Shown in pieces: positions 11,476 through 42,458 of a stretch of 64,000 bases of DNA; within the stretch, counting starts at the first letter, position 1, and the number at the start of each line of letters is the position of its first letter. The stretch is taken from sequence record ON287370.1; one strand, given 5' to 3'. Below the pieces are notes generated by a model. That model saw only the letters and a list, made by a program, of their open reading frames with translations. It did no database searches and had not been told where the DNA came from. Made by a program: the position numbers and the translations under genes.

Positions 11476-13392
11476 TTAGTAGTGGGTGTATGCGCCAGAG
11501 AAGCCACCCATTGCGCCTACCTGCATACCCTGCTGCAGAACTGCAGACATAGTGTAGTTCAGGTAATCGTTGCTGTGCTGTACCTGCCATGCGGATACGT
11601 TGTTGCTTGCAGACATGGTCATTGCACCAGCAGTTGCCATTGCGCGTGCTGCGGTGTTGAAGAACGCATCTTCCCATACGAAACGACGTTTCCAACCTTC
11701 GATGATTACGTTGGTATCGAACAGTTGATTCAGCAGGTTGTAGATAGCGTACTGACGAGCTTTTGGATCGGTACCGGTTGCGCCGTTGATCAGACCCAGG
11801 TATTGGTTAACAGCTGGTTCGTTTTGACCGTAGTAGTTTTCCTGACGCAGGAACATGCCGTCAACTTCTGCCAGGTCGAACCATTTGCCATCTTTACCAC
11901 GAGCGATACCAGCAGGCATCATGATCGGAGTAGGTTTCAGGATTGCATCACCTGCAGTCCAGTCTTTACGAGGATCACGGTTCTGACCTTTGGAAGCGTT
12001 TTCAGAGATGATGCGGCTGAAAGCTTTGTTAGACAGAACGTCCATCAGGTTGATCAGAGCTTTATGGTAAGTAGAACCATTAGGCTGACCGATGATGTTC
12101 CACCAGAAGTCGGAGTTAGAAACGTCTTCGGTGAAGGATGCCAGATCCAGAACGTATACTGCGTTCGGAGCAACGTAGCTGTTCAGCCACTGGTTTACCT
12201 GTGCAGCGTTGGTGATGTTCTTATCGGTGATCATCTGGCTGGTGCCGTAAGCCCCGCCCAACATCTGAGTCAGGTAGTTGTTGAAGTTACCCAGGTTACC
12301 GGAATGACCAACTTCTTTACCACGGAATGCTTCAGAGAAGAACTGCATCTGGTTTGCACCGATAGATGCGTACAGACCCAGCAGAGCAGTCAGCATGGAG
12401 TTGTTGTTGTTCAGGGTTTCGCCAGGGATAGTGATACCAGTAGAGATTACTGGAACCAGTGGACCTACGTTAACGCCTGGACGCAGCTGACGAGCCTGCA
12501 GGAACTGAGCCTGAGACATTGCTTCCAGAGACACTTTCAGGTAAGTGGTGCAGATAGAACGAGTGTTGTTGCTGTTCATGTTCTGCGTATTGTTTTTGTT
12601 GGTAGTGTGCAGTTTAACTGCCAGGTTGTATGGAACTGGTTTGCCGTCGATGGTCGCACGGTTTACAGGTTCGATACGAGCCACAGCTGCATCATCTTTA
12701 CCGAACAGTTTACCGTCTTTGAACGGAGTTGGGAACTGAACGCCTTGTTTGGTAACTTCCAGAACAACCAGGTTGTACAGAGCAGTGTTCCACTCTTTCA
12801 GCAGGTTGGTACGAACTTCTGGAACAACGTCTTCAGCTTTCACTGCGTTCTTGATGAAGGTTTCCAGGTTAACTACAGAAGGAGCGATGATGACAACGTT
12901 CTTCATCTGCTGGCCTTCGTGGAATGCAGAAGTAGATTTGATCTTCTCCATCAGTTCCTGGTTCATGAAGGACGCTGGTACTTTAGCGATACCGCGAGGC
13001 ATGTTTTCGTTAGCCAGCATGATCACTTCGGTAGCTTCAGTAACACCAGTTTTGTAGAACAGAACTGGCATGACGTAGCGGGTGCCGTCGATCACAGTGG
13101 AGATGGTCAGACCTGGCAGCTGAGAACTGATGTCAGAAGTAATAGACTGAACCAGAGTCGGCAGAGAGATTTTCTGAGACTGAGATGCAGTGTTCTTCTG
13201 CAGGTATTTGATGGTTTCTTCCAGAGATTTCTGGATGTCTTTTACTTCAGCGATAGAGTGAGTAGAAGAGAACAGGTTCGCTTCACCCAGCAGACCGAAC
13301 AGAGCATTTGAAGATTGCATAGTGTTTTTACCAGCGTTGTTGTTAGAAGAAGAGTTAGCGTTGTTTGCGTTCATGTTGTTATCGAGAGACAT
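11476..13392 (-). CDS. chmA: Chimallin, major phage-nucleus shell protein
   Basis: 638 aa, Asn-rich disordered N-terminus, strong high-expression codon bias (long antisense shadow ORF), immediately upstream of nvRNAP beta'-N and downstream of the DNA polymerase block. Confidence 0.85.
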   Translation of the reverse strand: MSLDNNMNANNANSSSNNNAGKNTMQSSNALFGLLGEANLFSSTHSIAEVKDIQKSLEETIKYLQKNTASQSQKISLPTLVQSITSDISSQLPGLTISTVIDGTRYVMPVLFYKTGVTEATEVIMLANENMPRGIAKVPASFMNQELMEKIKSTSAFHEGQQMKNVVIIAPSVVNLETFIKNAVKAEDVVPEVRTNLLKEWNTALYNLVVLEVTKQGVQFPTPFKDGKLFGKDDAAVARIEPVNRATIDGKPVPYNLAVKLHTTNKNNTQNMNSNNTRSICTTYLKVSLEAMSQAQFLQARQLRPGVNVGPLVPVISTGITIPGETLNNNNSMLTALLGLYASIGANQMQFFSEAFRGKEVGHSGNLGNFNNYLTQMLGGAYGTSQMITDKNITNAAQVNQWLNSYVAPNAVYVLDLASFTEDVSNSDFWWNIIGQPNGSTYHKALINLMDVLSNKAFSRIISENASKGQNRDPRKDWTAGDAILKPTPIMMPAGIARGKDGKWFDLAEVDGMFLRQENYYGQNEPAVNQYLGLINGATGTDPKARQYAIYNLLNQLFDTNVIIEGWKRRFVWEDAFFNTAARAMATAGAMTMSASNNVSAWQVQHSNDYLNYTMSAVLQQGMQVGAMGGFSGAYTHY

Positions 13393-19991: not shown

Positions 19992-20942
19992 TTACATCAT
20001 ACCGTCATCGTCAGAACTACCGAACAGGTCAACTTCTTTATTACGGAATTGACCGGCCAGTTCATTGTTCTTGGTTTCTTTATTTTCGATCAGGGTTTTC
20101 AGTGACTGAATGGTATCACCATGATCCAGTACTGCGTGTACAGGAACAGACATACCAGAGAACGATTCGCCGAACAGACCTGACTTACGATACAACATGT
20201 TTTCGAATGGCGCACGGATTTCGTCAATGTTGTTATACAGGCTGATAGCCGCAACCGGTTTACGATCATAGCGACCGATATCACCTTCAGCCAGGAAAGT
20301 CACCTGACTCATGATTGGATCAGCTTGTGTCACATCAGTAAAGAAGAAGAAGTTCTTGATGTCTGCATAATCGATGCGTTCGTTTTCCATGTTGAACATC
20401 ATCAATGCATTATCAATTTCACCAACTGCACGTTGGTTAACCTGACCCTGAGAAACAGTTGCGCTGTTTTCAATGTAGTTGAACAGAACTGGAGAACCAG
20501 TTTTGATCTGGTTGTACATCGAGCCCAGAGCTTCAACGGTGTTCTTCTCTTCATTGAAGGTAGACTTGTCACCAATACAGATAACTAGTACTGGGATCTT
20601 TTTCTGCAGCAGATAGCGCAGAGCATAAGGACCCATTGAAGCACCAGTACCGCCAGACAGTGAATAAGTCAGGATGTTGATTTTGTTTGGTTTGTATTTA
20701 GCAAACACTTGTTTAACAAAGTCGGCATACTTATCAGCATGAGCACGACGATCACCACCAGAACCTTCAACACCTTCCAGACGTTCTAGTGGATACATTC
20801 CGTCAACTACTGGGTTTGCTTCAGAAGTATCCAGGGCAACTACCTGATCGATGAAACGACTGTTCTTACCTTCTGAAAGATAACGGTTCAGAATGTTGAT
20901 ACCAGTGCCACCGAAATGATAGAGGTTAAAGTCTTTAGACAT
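19992..20942 (-). CDS. phuZ: PhuZ phage tubulin
   Basis: FGGTGINI N-terminal motif, EGSGG, tubulin signature SLSGGTGAS, acidic C-terminal tail, 316 aa. Confidence 0.95.
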   Translation of the reverse strand: MSKDFNLYHFGGTGINILNRYLSEGKNSRFIDQVVALDTSEANPVVDGMYPLERLEGVEGSGGDRRAHADKYADFVKQVFAKYKPNKINILTYSLSGGTGASMGPYALRYLLQKKIPVLVICIGDKSTFNEEKNTVEALGSMYNQIKTGSPVLFNYIENSATVSQGQVNQRAVGEIDNALMMFNMENERIDYADIKNFFFFTDVTQADPIMSQVTFLAEGDIGRYDRKPVAAISLYNNIDEIRAPFENMLYRKSGLFGESFSGMSVPVHAVLDHGDTIQSLKTLIENKETKNNELAGQFRNKEVDLFGSSDDDGMM

Positions 20943-37580: not shown

Positions 37581-37634
37581 AATAAGTTCCTCTATACTCT
37601 AATGAAAATTAATATCAATGTATATTCCCTTTGA

Positions 37635-37650
37635 TAATATCTATTTAATT
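37635..37650 (-). promoter_or_regulatory. Early promoter
   Basis: Minus strand AATTAAATAGATATTA. Confidence 0.5.
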
Positions 37651-37679
37651 AATAATGGAACTTATTTATATTATGTAAC

Positions 37680-38380
37680 AAAAAGTGAACTTCTTCCACT
37701 TCACTTCTTGTCGTTCAAGTTGCATTGCTCATACACATTTAACTGTGAATATTTACACAGGCCAGAGATATTATGTCACGATTAATATTTCTGATTCTTT
37801 AAGCGGTCTTGACCGGAATAAGTACTCTTAAAGAATCACGTACTGCCATCGTGCTTTCACTACGATTACCCCCGCCTGGGTTTTTGTAGCCATTGTTCAT
37901 GCCCTTAGCCAAAGGTGGGAAGTCTGCCCTTCCCCCTTTCTTTATAGCCTATTCAATTAGAAAGAGTAGATATAAAGAAGGGATCGTGCTCCGCGGCTTT
38001 GATATCTTCACAATAGGTAAGAAGGTGAGTGCATACTCCTTTTCCTGGTATGCATTTGCTTTCCCTAAGAGTATTAGAAATAGTATTCCTAGGGAAGGCA
38101 AGGAAGTCTTCAGTGAGGTTGGTAAGGGTCGAAAGACCCTACTTCCATATGTTTGTTTTCTGAAATATGGATATGGAAGTTATAGCTGCCTAAACTTCAA
38201 GCGTATGTGTTTAAGCTTATATTGAGCAGCCAGAGGAATGAATCTCTGGCACTTTTAATGTGATCTAACAAGTACACATTAAAAGCGTAACCGCCAGCTG
38301 GTTGCTGCTTACCTCAATGGTTAATGTGTTCCATTGAGGATTCCCTTGCCCCATATCCTAGTGTTTGATATGGGGCCTTT
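37680..38380. repeat. Non-coding array of about 12 hairpins at the strand switch
   Basis: GATTCTTTAAG/CTTAAAGAATC, CTTTTAATGTG/CACATTAAAAG, CCTCAATGG/CCATTGAGG, CCCCATATC/GATATGGGG, CTTCCATAT/ATATGGAAG, AGGGTC-GAAA-GACCCT. Confidence 0.65.
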
Positions 38381-38399: not shown

Positions 38400-38645
38400 A
38401 TGCAAGAAACTAAGTTGCTTACTTTCTCAGAAGTTCTTGAAGGACTTAAAGAAGGGAAAAGATACCAGCGTAAAGGTTGGAACGGTAAAGGTCTATGTGT
38501 AACTATTCATAATGTTCCTGGGATTCAACCATTCTTCTTAATAATCGATGCGGCAAAACTTATATCCAATACCTGGGTTCCTTCAATCTCTGATCTGTTG
38601 GCAGAAGACTGGTTGGAATGGGGTGGTTTGTTTGCTGAGCTTTAA
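38400..38645 (+). CDS. tad2: Tad2-like (DUF2829) anti-Thoeris/anti-CBASS sponge
   Basis: TFSEVLEGLKEGKRYQRKGWNGKG ... WVPSISDLLAEDW, typical DUF2829 termini, 81 aa. Confidence 0.8.
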   Translation: MQETKLLTFSEVLEGLKEGKRYQRKGWNGKGLCVTIHNVPGIQPFFLIIDAAKLISNTWVPSISDLLAEDWLEWGGLFAEL

Positions 38646-38844
38646 AACATGGTGGTCTGCTAAGAACAAGTCTAAGCTATGGACCAATGCGGTATTGAGA
38701 AAGGTCAAGTTCCTGATGAATCATTTAGATGAAAAGGAAATCATCAAGATCTGGAACAATCATGGGGAAGAAGGAATTAACAAAACCATGATGAAATACA
38801 GACCAAGACCAAATACCATAGTCCCACCAAAAGTATTTAATTAA
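38623..38844 (+). CDS. Hypothetical protein
   Basis: In-frame GTG near tad2 end; start uncertain. Confidence 0.45.
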   Translation: MVCLLSFKTWWSAKNKSKLWTNAVLRKVKFLMNHLDEKEIIKIWNNHGEEGINKTMMKYRPRPNTIVPPKVFN

Positions 38845-39104
38845 CAGAGTTTACTATATTCTGTTAAGAACAAGGGCCGGCTGATAACAAAAGGAATGAT
38901 TACGCCATGGTCATTCACCTGGATCAGTCGGTTCGCCAATTCCCTTCCTAGGGCCGCGTTGCAGCGAATAGGAACTTCACTAGCGATTACATGTTCCAGC
39001 CTAACTAGTGTAGTATAATGGCAGGACCACAATTTGGATATTACGAATAGACTCTCAGCTCAAGTTAGATGAAACAAATGTTCAACTAACAAGGGTTAAA
39101 TGGA

Positions 39105-39308
39105 ATGAGATTATATATCGTAGAAAGAACTGATAGCGTAGGCTATGATGAATACGACTCATGTGTCGTAGCGGCACTTAGCGAAAGCGATGCCAAATAT
39201 GAGGCCACAGAACTGTGGTCTAAATACGATCCAGTGACGGTGAAGTTTATAGGCATTGCTGATTCTAAGGAACCAGGTGTCATACATTCTTCATTCAACG
39301 CAGGATAA
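39105..39308 (+). CDS. Small phage hypothetical protein
   Basis: 67 aa, GYDEYDSCVVAA...SSFNAG pattern common in phages. Confidence 0.7.
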   Translation: MRLYIVERTDSVGYDEYDSCVVAALSESDAKYEATELWSKYDPVTVKFIGIADSKEPGVIHSSFNAG

Positions 39309-39318
39309 ACAGGATTAA

Positions 39319-39444
39319 CCCCACTGCCCTTCCAAACGTAATAGACGCGAACCGGGTGTCACATTGATCAAGGTATCAGGTGAGCCGAAACGGATTGTTG
39401 AATTACAAGTAAGAATCAGTGCTGACTTAGATGTCAAAGTGGGG
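39319..39444 (+). ncRNA. Candidate multi-stem ncRNA
   Basis: CCCCACT/AGTGGGG closing helix with 4-5 internal hairpins; no ORF. Confidence 0.4.
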
Positions 39445-39506
39445 TGTCTTCCTTAAACTCTTGCTTAAAGCTTTATTACGATAAGTCTTTGAGCGAGCGT
39501 TTCGGG

Positions 39507-39653
39507 TTGGGTGCGCCAAAGGAGCCATCGTAGGCCAAGTCTGGGGGATAATGGGTGAGACCCATGTGATGCCAGAGCAGGGTTACCGCGAGGTAATCAA
39601 ACCGAGTTACAGTTGGACATTGTCTGACCTGGGAGCTAGTGACTCCCACCCAA
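39507..39653 (+). ncRNA. Candidate ncRNA with T-arm-like hairpin abutting tRNA-Asn
   Basis: TTGGG/CCCAA closure, GGGAG-CTAGTGA-CTCCC 5-bp stem with 7-nt loop, GNRA hairpins (GAGA, GCGA). Confidence 0.5.
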
Positions 39654-39729
39654 GCTCATGTAGTTCAGTCGGTGGAACGGCGGACTGTTAATCCGTATGT
39701 CACAGGTTCGAGCCCTGTCATGAGCGCCA
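39654..39729 (+). tRNA. tRNA-Asn(GTT)
   Basis: GCTCATG/CATGAGC acceptor, GCGGA-CTGTTAA-TCCGT anticodon arm, TTCGAGC T loop, encoded CCA. Confidence 0.95.
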
Positions 39730-39734
39730 ATCAA

Positions 39735-39831
39735 TGCCCTATAGTGATGAGGGAATGGTGGATTATCAAATCTCCAGATTCTATTATCCATAAACCATTG
39801 TTGTGAAACGAATCATCACACAAGGGCACCA
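39735..39831 (+). ncRNA. CCA-terminated non-cloverleaf RNA between tRNAs
   Basis: GCCCT/AGGGC + A + CCA, GTGATGA/TCATCAC, AATGGT/ACCATT; no canonical D or T arm. Confidence 0.5.
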
Positions 39832-39836
39832 TATGA

Positions 39837-39925
39837 AGAGAGTTGGATGAGTTGGTTTAAGTCGCCTCCCTGCTAAGGAGGTTGTCCTTCGGGGCACAAG
39901 GGTTCGAATCCCTTACTCTCTGCCA
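39837..39925 (+). tRNA. tRNA-Ser(GCT)
   Basis: AGAGAGT/ACTCTCT acceptor, CCTCC-CTGCTAA-GGAGG, long variable arm, G73, CCA. Confidence 0.93.
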
Positions 39926-39929
39926 TTTC

Positions 39930-40006
39930 CCGCTCTTAGCTCAGCAGGATAGAGCAATTGCCTTCTAAGCAATCGGTCACTGGTTCGAATCCAGTAGAGT
40001 GGACCA
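39930..40006 (+). tRNA. tRNA-Arg(TCT)
   Basis: CCGCTCT/AGAGTGG acceptor, ATTGC-CTTCTAA-GCAAT, TTCGAAT, CCA. Confidence 0.95.
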
Positions 40007-40023
40007 CTTATTAAGGAGTTACT

Positions 40024-40152
40024 ATGTATTTTAGTGGTGGCTCCTGGACAGGGGCTTTTGTAATCTTTGGATTACTTTGCGCTGTAGTTGGTTGGGGCGT
40101 TATTGAAACACTACGTTGGCTTTTCTCTTTCGTCCATATTACATTTGGTTAG
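40024..40152 (+). CDS. Small membrane protein (42 aa), not in ORF track
   Basis: AAGGAG RBS; MYFSGGSWTGAFVIFGLLCAVVGWGVIETLRWLFSFVHITFG*. Confidence 0.65.
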   Translation: MYFSGGSWTGAFVIFGLLCAVVGWGVIETLRWLFSFVHITFG

Positions 40153-40162
40153 GAATATTTAA

Positions 40163-40429
40163 ATGAAAGTTGTAATTTATGGCAAACCGAATTGCCCATG
40201 GTGTGATCGCGCCAAGAACCTGGTTAAAGATGTTGAAGGTATTGAACATGAATACATCGACATTACTCAAGTTGGGATCGATGGCCCTAAGCTTAGTGAA
40301 ATCTGCGGTGAAGAAGTTCGCACAGTTCCACAGATCCTGGTTGACGGTAAATACAATCCACATGGCTTCCAAGGTCTGATACCAGTTGTTGCTAAACACA
40401 AAGCAAGTCTTCCTCAAAAAGAAGCTTGA
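40163..40429 (+). CDS. Glutaredoxin
   Basis: YGKPNCPWC redox motif, TVPQI, 88 aa. Confidence 0.9.
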   Translation: MKVVIYGKPNCPWCDRAKNLVKDVEGIEHEYIDITQVGIDGPKLSEICGEEVRTVPQILVDGKYNPHGFQGLIPVVAKHKASLPQKEA

Positions 40430-40435
40430 TAGTGC

Positions 40436-40512
40436 GGCCCTGTAGCTCAGTTGGTTAGAGCAAGTGACTCATAATCGCCTGGTCACAGGTTCAAGTCCTG
40501 TCAGGGCCACCA
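40436..40512 (+). tRNA. tRNA-Ile2(CAT) (lysidine type)
   Basis: GGCCCTG/CAGGGCC A73 CCA; GACTCATAATCGC and overall sequence close to enterobacterial tRNA-Ile2, not fMet. Confidence 0.88.
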
Positions 40513-40520
40513 TGTAGTAA

Positions 40521-40898
40521 CCCAGTTAAGTTGGGAAGTGTAAGTCTGGTCCAATGAGCCGATTGATTCGGGGTTGGAAGGGGTTTGCCAGTCAACGGTA
40601 TTGGGATGTAAGACCTCTGTAAGTTCGGCCCTACTGGGCAGACAAGTACAGAGGCAATACCTGGCTAGTATGCCAGGTTTAAATCCAAGAGTGAACGGCG
40701 GCGAGAGTCCGCTATTGTAAATAGCTCTTGGTGGGTGTTGTCCTGGTTAAGCCTCGGCGACATAGCAGCGCGTTTGATAGAATGCCCAGTAGCATAAGCT
40801 GAATGCACTTCCGATACGTGACTATTGGATTATCGATGATGGTAGAACCCGAACTCCATCCTGGGCGGTCATAAAAAACAATATCTATCTTAACTGGG
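40521..40898 (+). ncRNA. Candidate 378-nt pseudoknotted ncRNA
   Basis: CCCAGTTAAG/CTTAACTGGG perfect closing helix, GGAAGTGTA/TGCACTTCC, loop-derived CTACTGGGCA/TGCCCAGTAG 10-bp pseudoknot, several hairpins. Confidence 0.65.
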
Positions 40899-40982
40899 AA
40901 CGCTGTACCCATATGTGTCTTGGTATCGAACAAACCCTAGCTATATATGCATAAATGTGATGAGCTTGAGAGTTGATGATAC

Positions 40983-41112
40983 GGAGACACACCCATCGGT
41001 CCTTCTGAACGAAAGCATAACTTAAGGTTGAACATTGATGTTCAAATAACCTGGGAGAGTAATGAGATTACTCATGCGATATCAGAGGACCACCCTAATC
41101 CCTTTGGTGAGG
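40983..41112 (+). ncRNA. Multi-stem RNA domain 5' of the hammerhead
   Basis: GGTCC-TCTGA/TCAGA-GGACC, TTGAACA/TGTTCAA, GAGTAAT/ATTACTC, ACCCT/AGGGT. Confidence 0.55.
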
Positions 41113-41114
41113 GT

Positions 41115-41210
41115 TGTCGTACTATCTGACGAGTCTGACGACATAAAACAAGTAGACGAAACGGGTATCCAATAAGGTGTCTCCAGCACCATTGGAACCG
41201 TCATAGAACA
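41115..41210 (+). ncRNA. Type I hammerhead ribozyme, predicted cleavage GUC after 41202
   Basis: CUGACGA 41126-32; stem II GUCU/AGAC; GAAA 41158-61; stem III ACGG/CCGU extended by UCCAAU/AUUGGA and GGUG/CACC; stem I CUAU/AUAG; loop II pseudoknot UGUCGU/ACGACA. Confidence 0.9.
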
Positions 41211-41452
41211 GCTGTGCCCTAACCGTGAGCAGCCACCCGATGTTCAAGGGTGAGACAACAGCGCTTTAACTGGAAGGTAACTATATGGCATTATAGCGTA
41301 CCAAGCCAGACGCAAACGGTCCGTCTCCATGCCAGGGGAAAGTTGTTGACATCAACCGTAGACAGCCGTCTGAGTGATTGTAATATGAAGGGATTTGCAA
41401 CCCTGAGATTATTGATTGCTCTTTCGAGTGTCCATGTAACTAAGCATTTACT

Positions 41453-41482
41453 CCCTACCCCTTCCGAAAGGTTGGGGTAGGG
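41453..41482 (+). terminator. Terminator closing the ncRNA locus
   Basis: CCCTACCCC/GGGGTAGGG stem followed by U-rich tract. Confidence 0.8.
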
Positions 41483-41612
41483 GTTTATGTTTGTCTTTTA
41501 GTTTTAAATCATATGACGTCTTCTCTCTATTAACAAACCTAGGATGGTTGGATAGTGAGATCATTGCCTTTCTATAAAGGTCTATTTCGAAATAGTATTT
41601 AGGAGGGTTCAA

Positions 41613-42458
41613 GTGAATCCAGTTGATTTTAGTGTTGAGTATGTGATCAATGGTCCTACCGACATCTCTGAATATTTATTGAAGCTAGCCTTCCATAATC
41701 CAAATAACGGTTATGGAAGTATCTGGGCTCCAGTGAATGACGAGTTTACTGTAGAACAAGGTATTCGTGAAAAGGTCATCATGAAAATGGTTGGTCCTTT
41801 ACTTAATGTGGCTGGCGGTACTACGGAGATCATCGATCTTAGCGCAGCACATATTGAAAACCTTTCCGGTGGTATCATCGCAGTTAACGTTCCTGACTTC
41901 ATGACAGGTGGTCGTCGTATTCTTTCTGTCTTGGAAGTTTACCCAGGTAACATCAACCGAGCTATCAACAATGGTTATAACTTTAATAACTATGCAGCTT
42001 GTGGTTCTGGTATGATGAACAATAGTCTTAACCGCTTAATTAACGGTTTGGACGATGGTCAGGTTCAACGTTCCTTTACTAGCTTCACCATGACAGGTAA
42101 TAACTCCTTTATTATCCGTGACGCTGGTTCTGCGATGTTTAATATGATCGCTAAAGTTATTCTGTCTTATGACGAACACTTCAGCGTTATACCTGCAAGA
42201 ATGTATGACAAGTTTGCCGAGCTAGTAGAACTTGGTGTTAAAGCTTATATCTATAAGACATGTCGTCGTGGTATGCAAGAAGCCGTTTCACGTTTCGGTG
42301 TAACTGTTGAAGATGTTCAGGATGATATCCAAGGTTATGCTGATGCTCACCGTGAGTTCAAAGATCTGTATAATAATGAGATTAAGAAATATCTTGCTTA
42401 TGCTGATCCGAAAGGTAAGTCTGATGCAATTAAGATGACAGTCCCAAGGAAACGTTAA
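41613..42458 (+). CDS. Conserved phiKZ-like virion structural protein
   Basis: 281 aa, GTG start with AGGAGG; position upstream of terminase. Confidence 0.6.
   Translation: MNPVDFSVEYVINGPTDISEYLLKLAFHNPNNGYGSIWAPVNDEFTVEQGIREKVIMKMVGPLLNVAGGTTEIIDLSAAHIENLSGGIIAVNVPDFMTGGRRILSVLEVYPGNINRAINNGYNFNNYAACGSGMMNNSLNRLINGLDDGQVQRSFTSFTMTGNNSFIIRDAGSAMFNMIAKVILSYDEHFSVIPARMYDKFAELVELGVKAYIYKTCRRGMQEAVSRFGVTVEDVQDDIQGYADAHREFKDLYNNEIKKYLAYADPKGKSDAIKMTVPRKR

Follow-up and report, generated by a model that had tools for sequence, protein, structure and literature searches.

In phage T4, a transfer RNA (tRNA) gene cluster is co-transcribed with stable RNAs of ~120-140 nucleotides (nt), species 1 and 2, which involve host RNases only. 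Hammerhead ribozymes, whose cleavage leaves 2',3'-cyclic phosphate and 5'-OH ends, are common in phages, their role there being largely unknown. Type I phage hammerheads with a pseudoknot between stem I and stem II have been described (Perreault et al. 2011, PMC3088659), and pseudoknots of the stem I/loop II type, which occur in ~40% of hammerheads, are required for fast cleavage (PMC3088659). GOLLD and ROOL are ornate large phage and prophage RNAs that constitute Rfam families and for which cage structures have been obtained by cryo-electron microscopy (bioRxiv 10.1101/2024.12.08.627333). The stretch of DNA analysed here (the window) comprises 64,000 nt of record ON287370.1, and its coordinates are those of the 256,354 base pair (bp) genome of the Serratia jumbo phage vB_SmaM-Sureiya (genus Petsuvirus). 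Within it, a plus-strand locus, to which all features below belong unless otherwise stated, combines tRNA genes with a large structured non-coding RNA (ncRNA) ending in a hammerhead ribozyme, and thereby places a ribozyme of known class within a large-RNA setting that is new and undescribed.

A hammerhead at this locus had been proposed in the original prediction, and comparative sequence evidence now confirms the type I hammerhead at 41099-41214 as a genuine, fresh member of the ribozyme class. The catalytic core was checked for C3, U4, G5, A6, N7, G8 and A9, for G12, A13 and A14, for the A15.1-U16.1 pair and for H17, and the window holds it complete, with CUGACGA at 41126-41132, GAAA at 41158-41161, U41201 and C41202. 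Stem I is formed by 41122-41125 with 41203-41206, stem II by 41133-41136 with 41154-41157 and the long stem III by 41161-41201, C17 being located at 41202 and the predicted scissile bond between 41202 and 41203. RNAalifold also returned, unprompted, a pseudoknot of 6 bp in which 41115-41120, on the 5' side of stem I, pairs with 41138-41143 in loop II and where four pairs covary. The small size of stem I (3-4 bp) would favour release of the 3' product.

The hammerhead core is invariant at the same syntenic site in 12 phages, with the sole exception of N7, which is C, A or U. In an alignment of these 12 sequences (alignment A2), 94.4% of the hammerhead cells are paired and both sides have changed in 14 of the 24 pairs, namely in all four pairs of stem I, one of stem II, five of stem III and four of the pseudoknot. 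None of 500 shuffles reached the observed values, while slid 3' partners paired at 27-53%. Additional evidence was provided by an independent covariance model, trained only on 14 unrelated small-phage hammerheads, which matches 41110-41214 (28.3 bits, E 5.7e-6, 222 kilobases (kb) searched) and detects all 11 relatives as well, with no second match in the 64-kb window and none in distant relatives. A family-specific model likewise finds one hammerhead only in the 256-kb genome. Rfam reports no hammerhead in the window, either at the gathering threshold or at E<=10, and since its gathering search also misses the hammerheads of control phages, this silence says little either way. Three small-phage contigs of IMG/VR (L009, L015 and L022) were observed to carry two to three hammerheads each, just 5' of a ribosome-binding site; none of these reaches the Rfam gathering score, so that Rfam annotation under-counts phage hammerheads.

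The order of elements is common to all relatives: glutaredoxin gene or tRNA, large RNA, hammerhead, an optional domain D, terminator and a virion gene with DUF7484. BLAST with the non-coding region retrieved Yubaba, Klebsiella phage N1M2, Kosakonia phage Kc263, Shewanella phage SXP01, Edwardsiella phage pEt-SU, Pantoea phage Survivor, Pseudomonas phage OBP and Erwinia phage AH04, and a pattern scan of IMG/VR added four metagenomic jumbo contigs with the hammerhead core at the same syntenic place. The ~690-nt 5' RNA and the hammerhead were found together in 12/12 phages, and domain D in 9/12. Further IMG/VR pattern scans for family members gave chance matches only, and loci anchored on DUF7484 in IMG/VR and metagenomes added only distant relatives without the large RNA. 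In more distant Chimalliviridae (40-46% identity), neither tRNAs nor large RNA are present at the site. The literature on jumbo or Chimalliviridae phages yielded nothing specific on hammerheads or large ncRNAs, and the phiKZ ncRNAs known from Grad-seq are unrelated fragments of untranslated regions.

The large RNA upstream of the cut is modular. Its 5' domain (40520-40770), identified in all 12 phages by nhmmer matches and covarying helices, includes the invariant GUAAGACC and a 10-bp helix (40612-40622/40647-40655). It is followed at 40771-40990 by a middle module (to ~40915) and a variable region, delineated from an alignment of the 12 phages (alignment A4) and by nhmmer; the middle module is missing in two metagenomic relatives and differs in OBP. 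The 3' module (40991-41098), present in all 12, is a three-way junction whose 13-bp closing helix (40996-41008/41082-41094) covaries at 7 of its 13 pairs. At its junction lies the near-invariant GCGAUAUC (41077-41084, all 12 phages) with the self-complementary GAUAUC, which could, as a matter of speculation, mediate RNA-RNA dimerisation.

RNAalifold was applied to the 5' RNA together with the hammerhead in alignment A4, and 36 of the 62 predicted pairs displayed a double change. With RIBOSUM scoring, 143 pairs were predicted for the same 12 phages, with 86.6% pairing and with 83 pairs double-changed compared to 46±4 in shuffled alignments, and the slid controls for this structure gave 36-46% pairing. 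Conservation across the 973 nt that separate tRNA-Met from the terminator is 70-90% where the neighbouring DUF7484 protein is 72-91% identical, and Sureiya and Yubaba agree here at 99.9%, as against 95% in region A (39310-39653). The 973-nt region has no conserved open reading frame (ORF) and its substitutions are without 3-base periodicity, on which grounds protein-coding potential of the large RNA was rejected. Described large RNAs were checked via the Rfam models of GOLLD, ROOL, RNase P RNA, group I/II introns, tmRNA, OLE and HEARO. At E<=10, only scattered weak matches far below the gathering scores were obtained for the window locus besides the tRNAs, and no Rfam family recurs in the large-RNA region of seven divergent relatives. 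The large RNA thus appears to belong to no described family. A likeness of GUAAGACC and AGAACCCGAAC to the P4 strands of RNase P RNA was also considered and then dropped, there being no match to an RNase P model; moreover, the second motif (AGAACCCGAAC) is missing in three family members and shows no complementarity to the first.

Downstream of the cleavage site, the 3' domain D (41203-41450, ~250 nt, predicted 5'-OH start) is present in nine of the 12 phages, where 69 pairs are predicted and 30 of these are compensatory compared to 17±2.4 in shuffles. SXP01, pEt-SU and Survivor are devoid of it, and their terminator stands ~20-27 nt past the cleavage site; consequently, the 283-nt RNA is optional as a module and does not count among the core products. 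The strong terminator predicted at 41453-41482 corresponds to a hairpin at 41452-41483 with a U-rich tail (to 41492), which folds as predicted and is kept in the relatives with four covarying pairs; a simple terminator scanner missed it owing to two U·U mismatches in the stem. The predicted product sizes, 690 nt and 283 nt, are arithmetically right.

Taken together, it is considered probable that the locus yields stable ncRNAs and that the hammerhead is the built-in 3'-end maker of the ~690-nt RNA. A single transcript closed by one terminator would comprise the four tRNAs, the coding sequences of both small proteins and several structured RNAs, all in head-to-tail order on the same strand, and its main product would be a modular, highly folded RNA of ~690 nt (~40520-41202) of which the last 100 nt are the type I hammerhead. 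Cleavage after C41202 would fix the 3' end of this RNA, leaving a 2',3'-cyclic phosphate on it, and would free a 5'-OH downstream part, consisting of the ~250-nt RNA with the terminator in nine phages and of the terminator hairpin alone in three. Its 5' end would be set by tRNA processing in Sureiya and N1M2 and less directly in OBP. The hammerhead would thereby serve both as punctuation and for 3'-end formation without a host RNase. As the 5' RNA and the ribozyme form the constant unit whereas domain D is optional, the 5' product is taken as the functional molecule, and we would guess that it works in trans, as an RNA scaffold or assembly resembling GOLLD and ROOL, rather than as a regulator in cis.

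A broader proposal is put forward more tentatively, being possible but on the doubtful side, whereby the 0.7-1 kb RNA would represent an undescribed, self-processing and modular class specific to a clade of nucleus-forming jumbo phages. It would act in trans, either by titrating a host factor or by forming a scaffold or assembly composed of RNA only, and would generate its cyclic-phosphate 3' end itself, independently of host RNases. Such an RNA might mature or stay in the phage nucleus, from which host RNases are excluded.

Several points weigh against the view of a stable RNA with a ribozyme-made end. Covariation was counted on the same alignments that gave the structures, which inflates its support, and only 12 distinct sequences were available, five of them close to one another. 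Co-transcription, cleavage in vivo and accumulation of the RNA are all inferred from sequence, and nothing defines where the large RNA starts in phages that have no adjacent tRNA. A further point comes from a sister clade (Aeromonas-type, ~70% DUF7484 protein identity), where tRNAs are accompanied by a gap of ~950 nt that lacks a hammerhead core and retains only the short collinear remnants AGACGAAACG, GCCCUAACAGUGAG and GUAAGACC; some lineages can therefore do without the element. In one metagenomic contig of this type (L046:3440-3640, non-coding gap 5' of the DUF7484 gene), collinear remnants of the 3' half of the hammerhead (GUCU-UUC-AGAC-GAAAC), a hairpin motif of domain D and GUAAGACC were noted in the absence of CUGANGA, so that the ribozyme appears to have been lost or replaced in that clade.

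Three other explanations of the locus were weighed. The hammerhead could be an mRNA-processing site, at which read-through into the late virion genes (DUF7484, starting at 41613) is cut so that the mRNA receives a 5'-OH and a protective hairpin, the upstream RNA being a structured spacer or 3' untranslated region. Hammerheads of unrelated small phages with the same core do lie 20-40 nt 5' of a ribosome-binding site and start codon, several of these contigs carry two to three copies, as in the described phage examples (PMC3088659), and in SXP01, pEt-SU and Survivor the hammerhead is only ~110 nt 5' of the DUF7484 start codon. In all 12 phages, however, a conserved GC-rich hairpin with a U tract separates the hammerhead from the gene, and in nine of them the covarying 250-nt RNA domain intervenes as well. 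What follows the single copy in 256 kb is an RNA domain and/or a terminator instead of a ribosome-binding site, which does not fit mRNA punctuation, and a spacer would leave ~600 nt of upstream structure supported by covariation unexplained. Processing of mRNA is consequently regarded as unlikely.

According to the original prediction, the released RNAs would be decoys for RNA-sensing or RNA-cleaving defences, with ends suited to RtcB ligation or RNase E evasion and with maturation in the phage nucleus. Some features of the phage agree with parts of this proposal: a shell protein and a PhuZ-like tubulin are encoded, an anti-Thoeris ORF resembling Tad2 precedes the locus in the same orientation, and RNase E, where stimulated by a 5'-monophosphate, acts poorly on a 5'-OH end. 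Maturation of the RNAs inside the nucleus is possible. The ligation part, on the other hand, found no support in the phage, as tblastn with E. coli RtcB and RtcA returned noise (E>2) and the annotation of the whole 256-kb phage genome contains no RNA ligase, a result that concerns the phage genome only, host RtcB lying outside its scope. Moreover, tRNA 3' processing leaves a 5'-phosphate, so that the 690-nt RNA would not be a substrate for RtcB circularisation. Neither repeats nor recognisable mimics of known defence targets were seen that would suit a decoy, and the 5'-OH RNA (domain D) is missing in 3/12 phages. The decoy proposal as a whole is therefore held to be very improbable.

The remaining explanation, of a decaying relic or chance match within drifting non-coding DNA or unannotated small proteins, could appeal to the lack of any Rfam hammerhead match and to the sister clade that has lost the core, but is given next to no credence and appears already refuted in practice by the covariation of hammerhead and large RNA and by the independent model match, given also that Rfam misses textbook hammerheads in control contigs, that the core is invariant and the helices covary while the neighbouring protein is at 72-91% identity, that conserved ORFs and codon periodicity are lacking, and that Sureiya and Yubaba are closer in the 973-nt region than in region A.

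The four interleaved tRNAs that had been predicted were found by both ARAGORN and Rfam and are the sole tRNAs annotated in the genome: tRNA-Asn (GUU, 39654-39729, Rfam tRNA 70.6 bits), tRNA-Ser (GCU, 39837-39925), tRNA-Arg (UCU, 39930-40006) and a tRNA with a CAU anticodon and encoded CCA, called Met (40436-40512). In the latter, the 1-72 end is paired, which excludes the initiator type and leaves an elongator tRNA-Met or a lysidine-requiring tRNA-Ile2 as candidates. At the corresponding place in N1M2 (L002:1550-2125), a Sureiya-type tRNA-Asn breaks off after its first 27 nt at an inserted HNH endonuclease ORF, behind which stands a complete tRNA-Asn of different sequence, an arrangement that looks like a homing-endonuclease cassette bringing its own replacement tRNA. 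The two small genes of the original prediction were recovered as well, one (40024-40152) coding for a conserved hydrophobic membrane peptide of 42 amino acids (aa), 69% identical to a co-located 41-aa ORF of pEt-SU, and the other (40163-40429) for an 88-aa glutaredoxin (Pfam PF00462, E 4e-12) that is syntenic in all relatives.

As for the structured domains that had been predicted, the regions 40513-41202 and 41203-41450 and the upstream modules A1 and A2 are comparatively backed, while spacer B depends on its folding z-score only. Module A1 (39313-39456, ~140 nt, closing helix CCCAC/GUGGG) is conserved in N1M2, Kc263, Survivor and OBP, and RNAalifold on five sequences predicted 41 pairs, 14 of them compensatory. 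Module A2 (39457-39650, ~190 nt), directly 5' of tRNA-Asn, occurs in N1M2 and in the metagenomic contig UViG266k (L019:1061-1251), in which it is 88% identical with one hairpin swapped compensatorily; neither module has an Rfam match. In UViG266k, A2 is not adjacent to a tRNA and is far less diverged than the contig's large RNA and flanking genes, which points to horizontal transfer of the RNA module or else to very strong constraint. Spacer B (39730-39836), the hairpin-forming 107 nt between tRNA-Asn and tRNA-Ser, has a folding z-score of -2.3 and no homologue outside this phage lineage, its structure being without comparative support. A second hammerhead considered there (GUGAUGA...GAAAC) was discarded, as the two motifs pair together in a plain hairpin and the region is not conserved.

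Two ORFs lie upstream of these modules. An ORF of 81 aa (38400-38645) matches the Pfam Tad2-like family (Thoeris anti-defence 2, E 8e-17) and is syntenic in the relatives, being labelled DUF2829 in pEt-SU. The next one, of 67 aa (39105-39308), is labelled 'helicase superfamily 1/2, ATP-binding protein' in GenBank; it has no Pfam match and falls only in a PHROG of unknown function, and the helicase label looks wrong. A scan of 38500-41450 on the plus strand revealed no other terminator-like site of note. Synteny, strand arrangement and this lack of an internal terminator-like site suggest a single transcription unit running from the Tad2-like ORF and the 67-aa ORF through A1/A2, the tRNAs, the peptide and glutaredoxin genes, the last tRNA, the large RNA, the hammerhead and domain D to the terminator. 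Apart from 37581-37892, the only long stretches of the genome free of ORFs (>=70 aa) lie in this locus.

The assumption that Sureiya is a phage of the chimallin type was also borne out. Comparison of four candidate ORFs with Pfam and PDB sequences gave no chimallin match; PHROGs then identified the nuclear-shell (chimallin) protein at 11476-13392 on the minus strand (phrog_4795, E 8.6e-125), which is labelled hypothetical. A PhuZ-like tubulin gene is located near it (19992-20942, minus strand), and the genome also encodes phiKZ-type RNA polymerase subunits. These three features make a chimallin nucleus a reasonable assumption, and the relative OBP is listed as chimallin-encoding (bioRxiv 10.1101/2023.02.24.529968). 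Elsewhere in the genome, outside the window, the ribonucleotide reductase beta subunit (121088-123182) is annotated as two pieces around a winged-helix ORF, an arrangement suggestive of an intron or intein whose insert resembles a homing endonuclease.

Compared to the described systems, the locus shares with viroids and retrozymes, which are hammerhead-bearing circular RNAs, a hammerhead cleavage (predicted here) to 2',3'-cyclic phosphate and 5'-OH ends suited to cellular ligases; it differs in having one hammerhead per unit, on one strand and without tandem repeat, and because the other end of the large RNA is not ribozyme-made, unit-length circles are not expected. The T4 cluster resembles it in the interleaving of tRNAs and non-tRNA stable RNAs on one strand and in the release of neighbours by tRNA processing (predicted here), whereas the non-tRNA RNAs of Sureiya total more than 1.3 kb and one of their boundaries is predicted to be made by a ribozyme.

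With the pseudoknotted type I phage hammerheads (Perreault et al. 2011, PMC3088659), the Sureiya ribozyme has in common the catalytic core, the three-helix junction, the open stem I, the pseudoknot of 5-6 bp linking loop II to the strand beside stem I, and the phage setting. Its stem III, however, is of unusual length (three helical segments over ~40 nt), its loop II measures 17 nt and its score is below the Rfam thresholds. It also constitutes the 3' end of a conserved structured RNA of ~600 nt instead of standing just 5' of an ORF, and is followed by an RNA domain or a terminator. A phage hammerhead is thus found here at a defined and conserved place, in a phage with a tractable laboratory host, whereby the purpose of a ribozyme-made RNA end becomes testable.

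The likeness to GOLLD and ROOL is one of context and size, not of homology: 0.6-1 kb, many covarying helices, several domains, phage-encoded and near tRNA genes. No earlier candidate of this sort was found in chimallin-encoding phages, whose transcription is separated from host RNases and ribosomes, and its retention or maturation in the phage nucleus, should either occur, would bear on RNA sorting by these phages. A large undescribed RNA family with a hammerhead beside tRNA genes is a setting that merits experimental follow-up, and extends by one candidate the few very large structured phage RNAs found near tRNA genes, GOLLD and ROOL among them. What sets the Sureiya RNA apart from these two is the absence of any Rfam family match at E<=10, in Sureiya itself and in seven divergent relatives, its self-cleaving ribozyme, and an occurrence restricted to one clade of chimallin-encoding jumbo phages.

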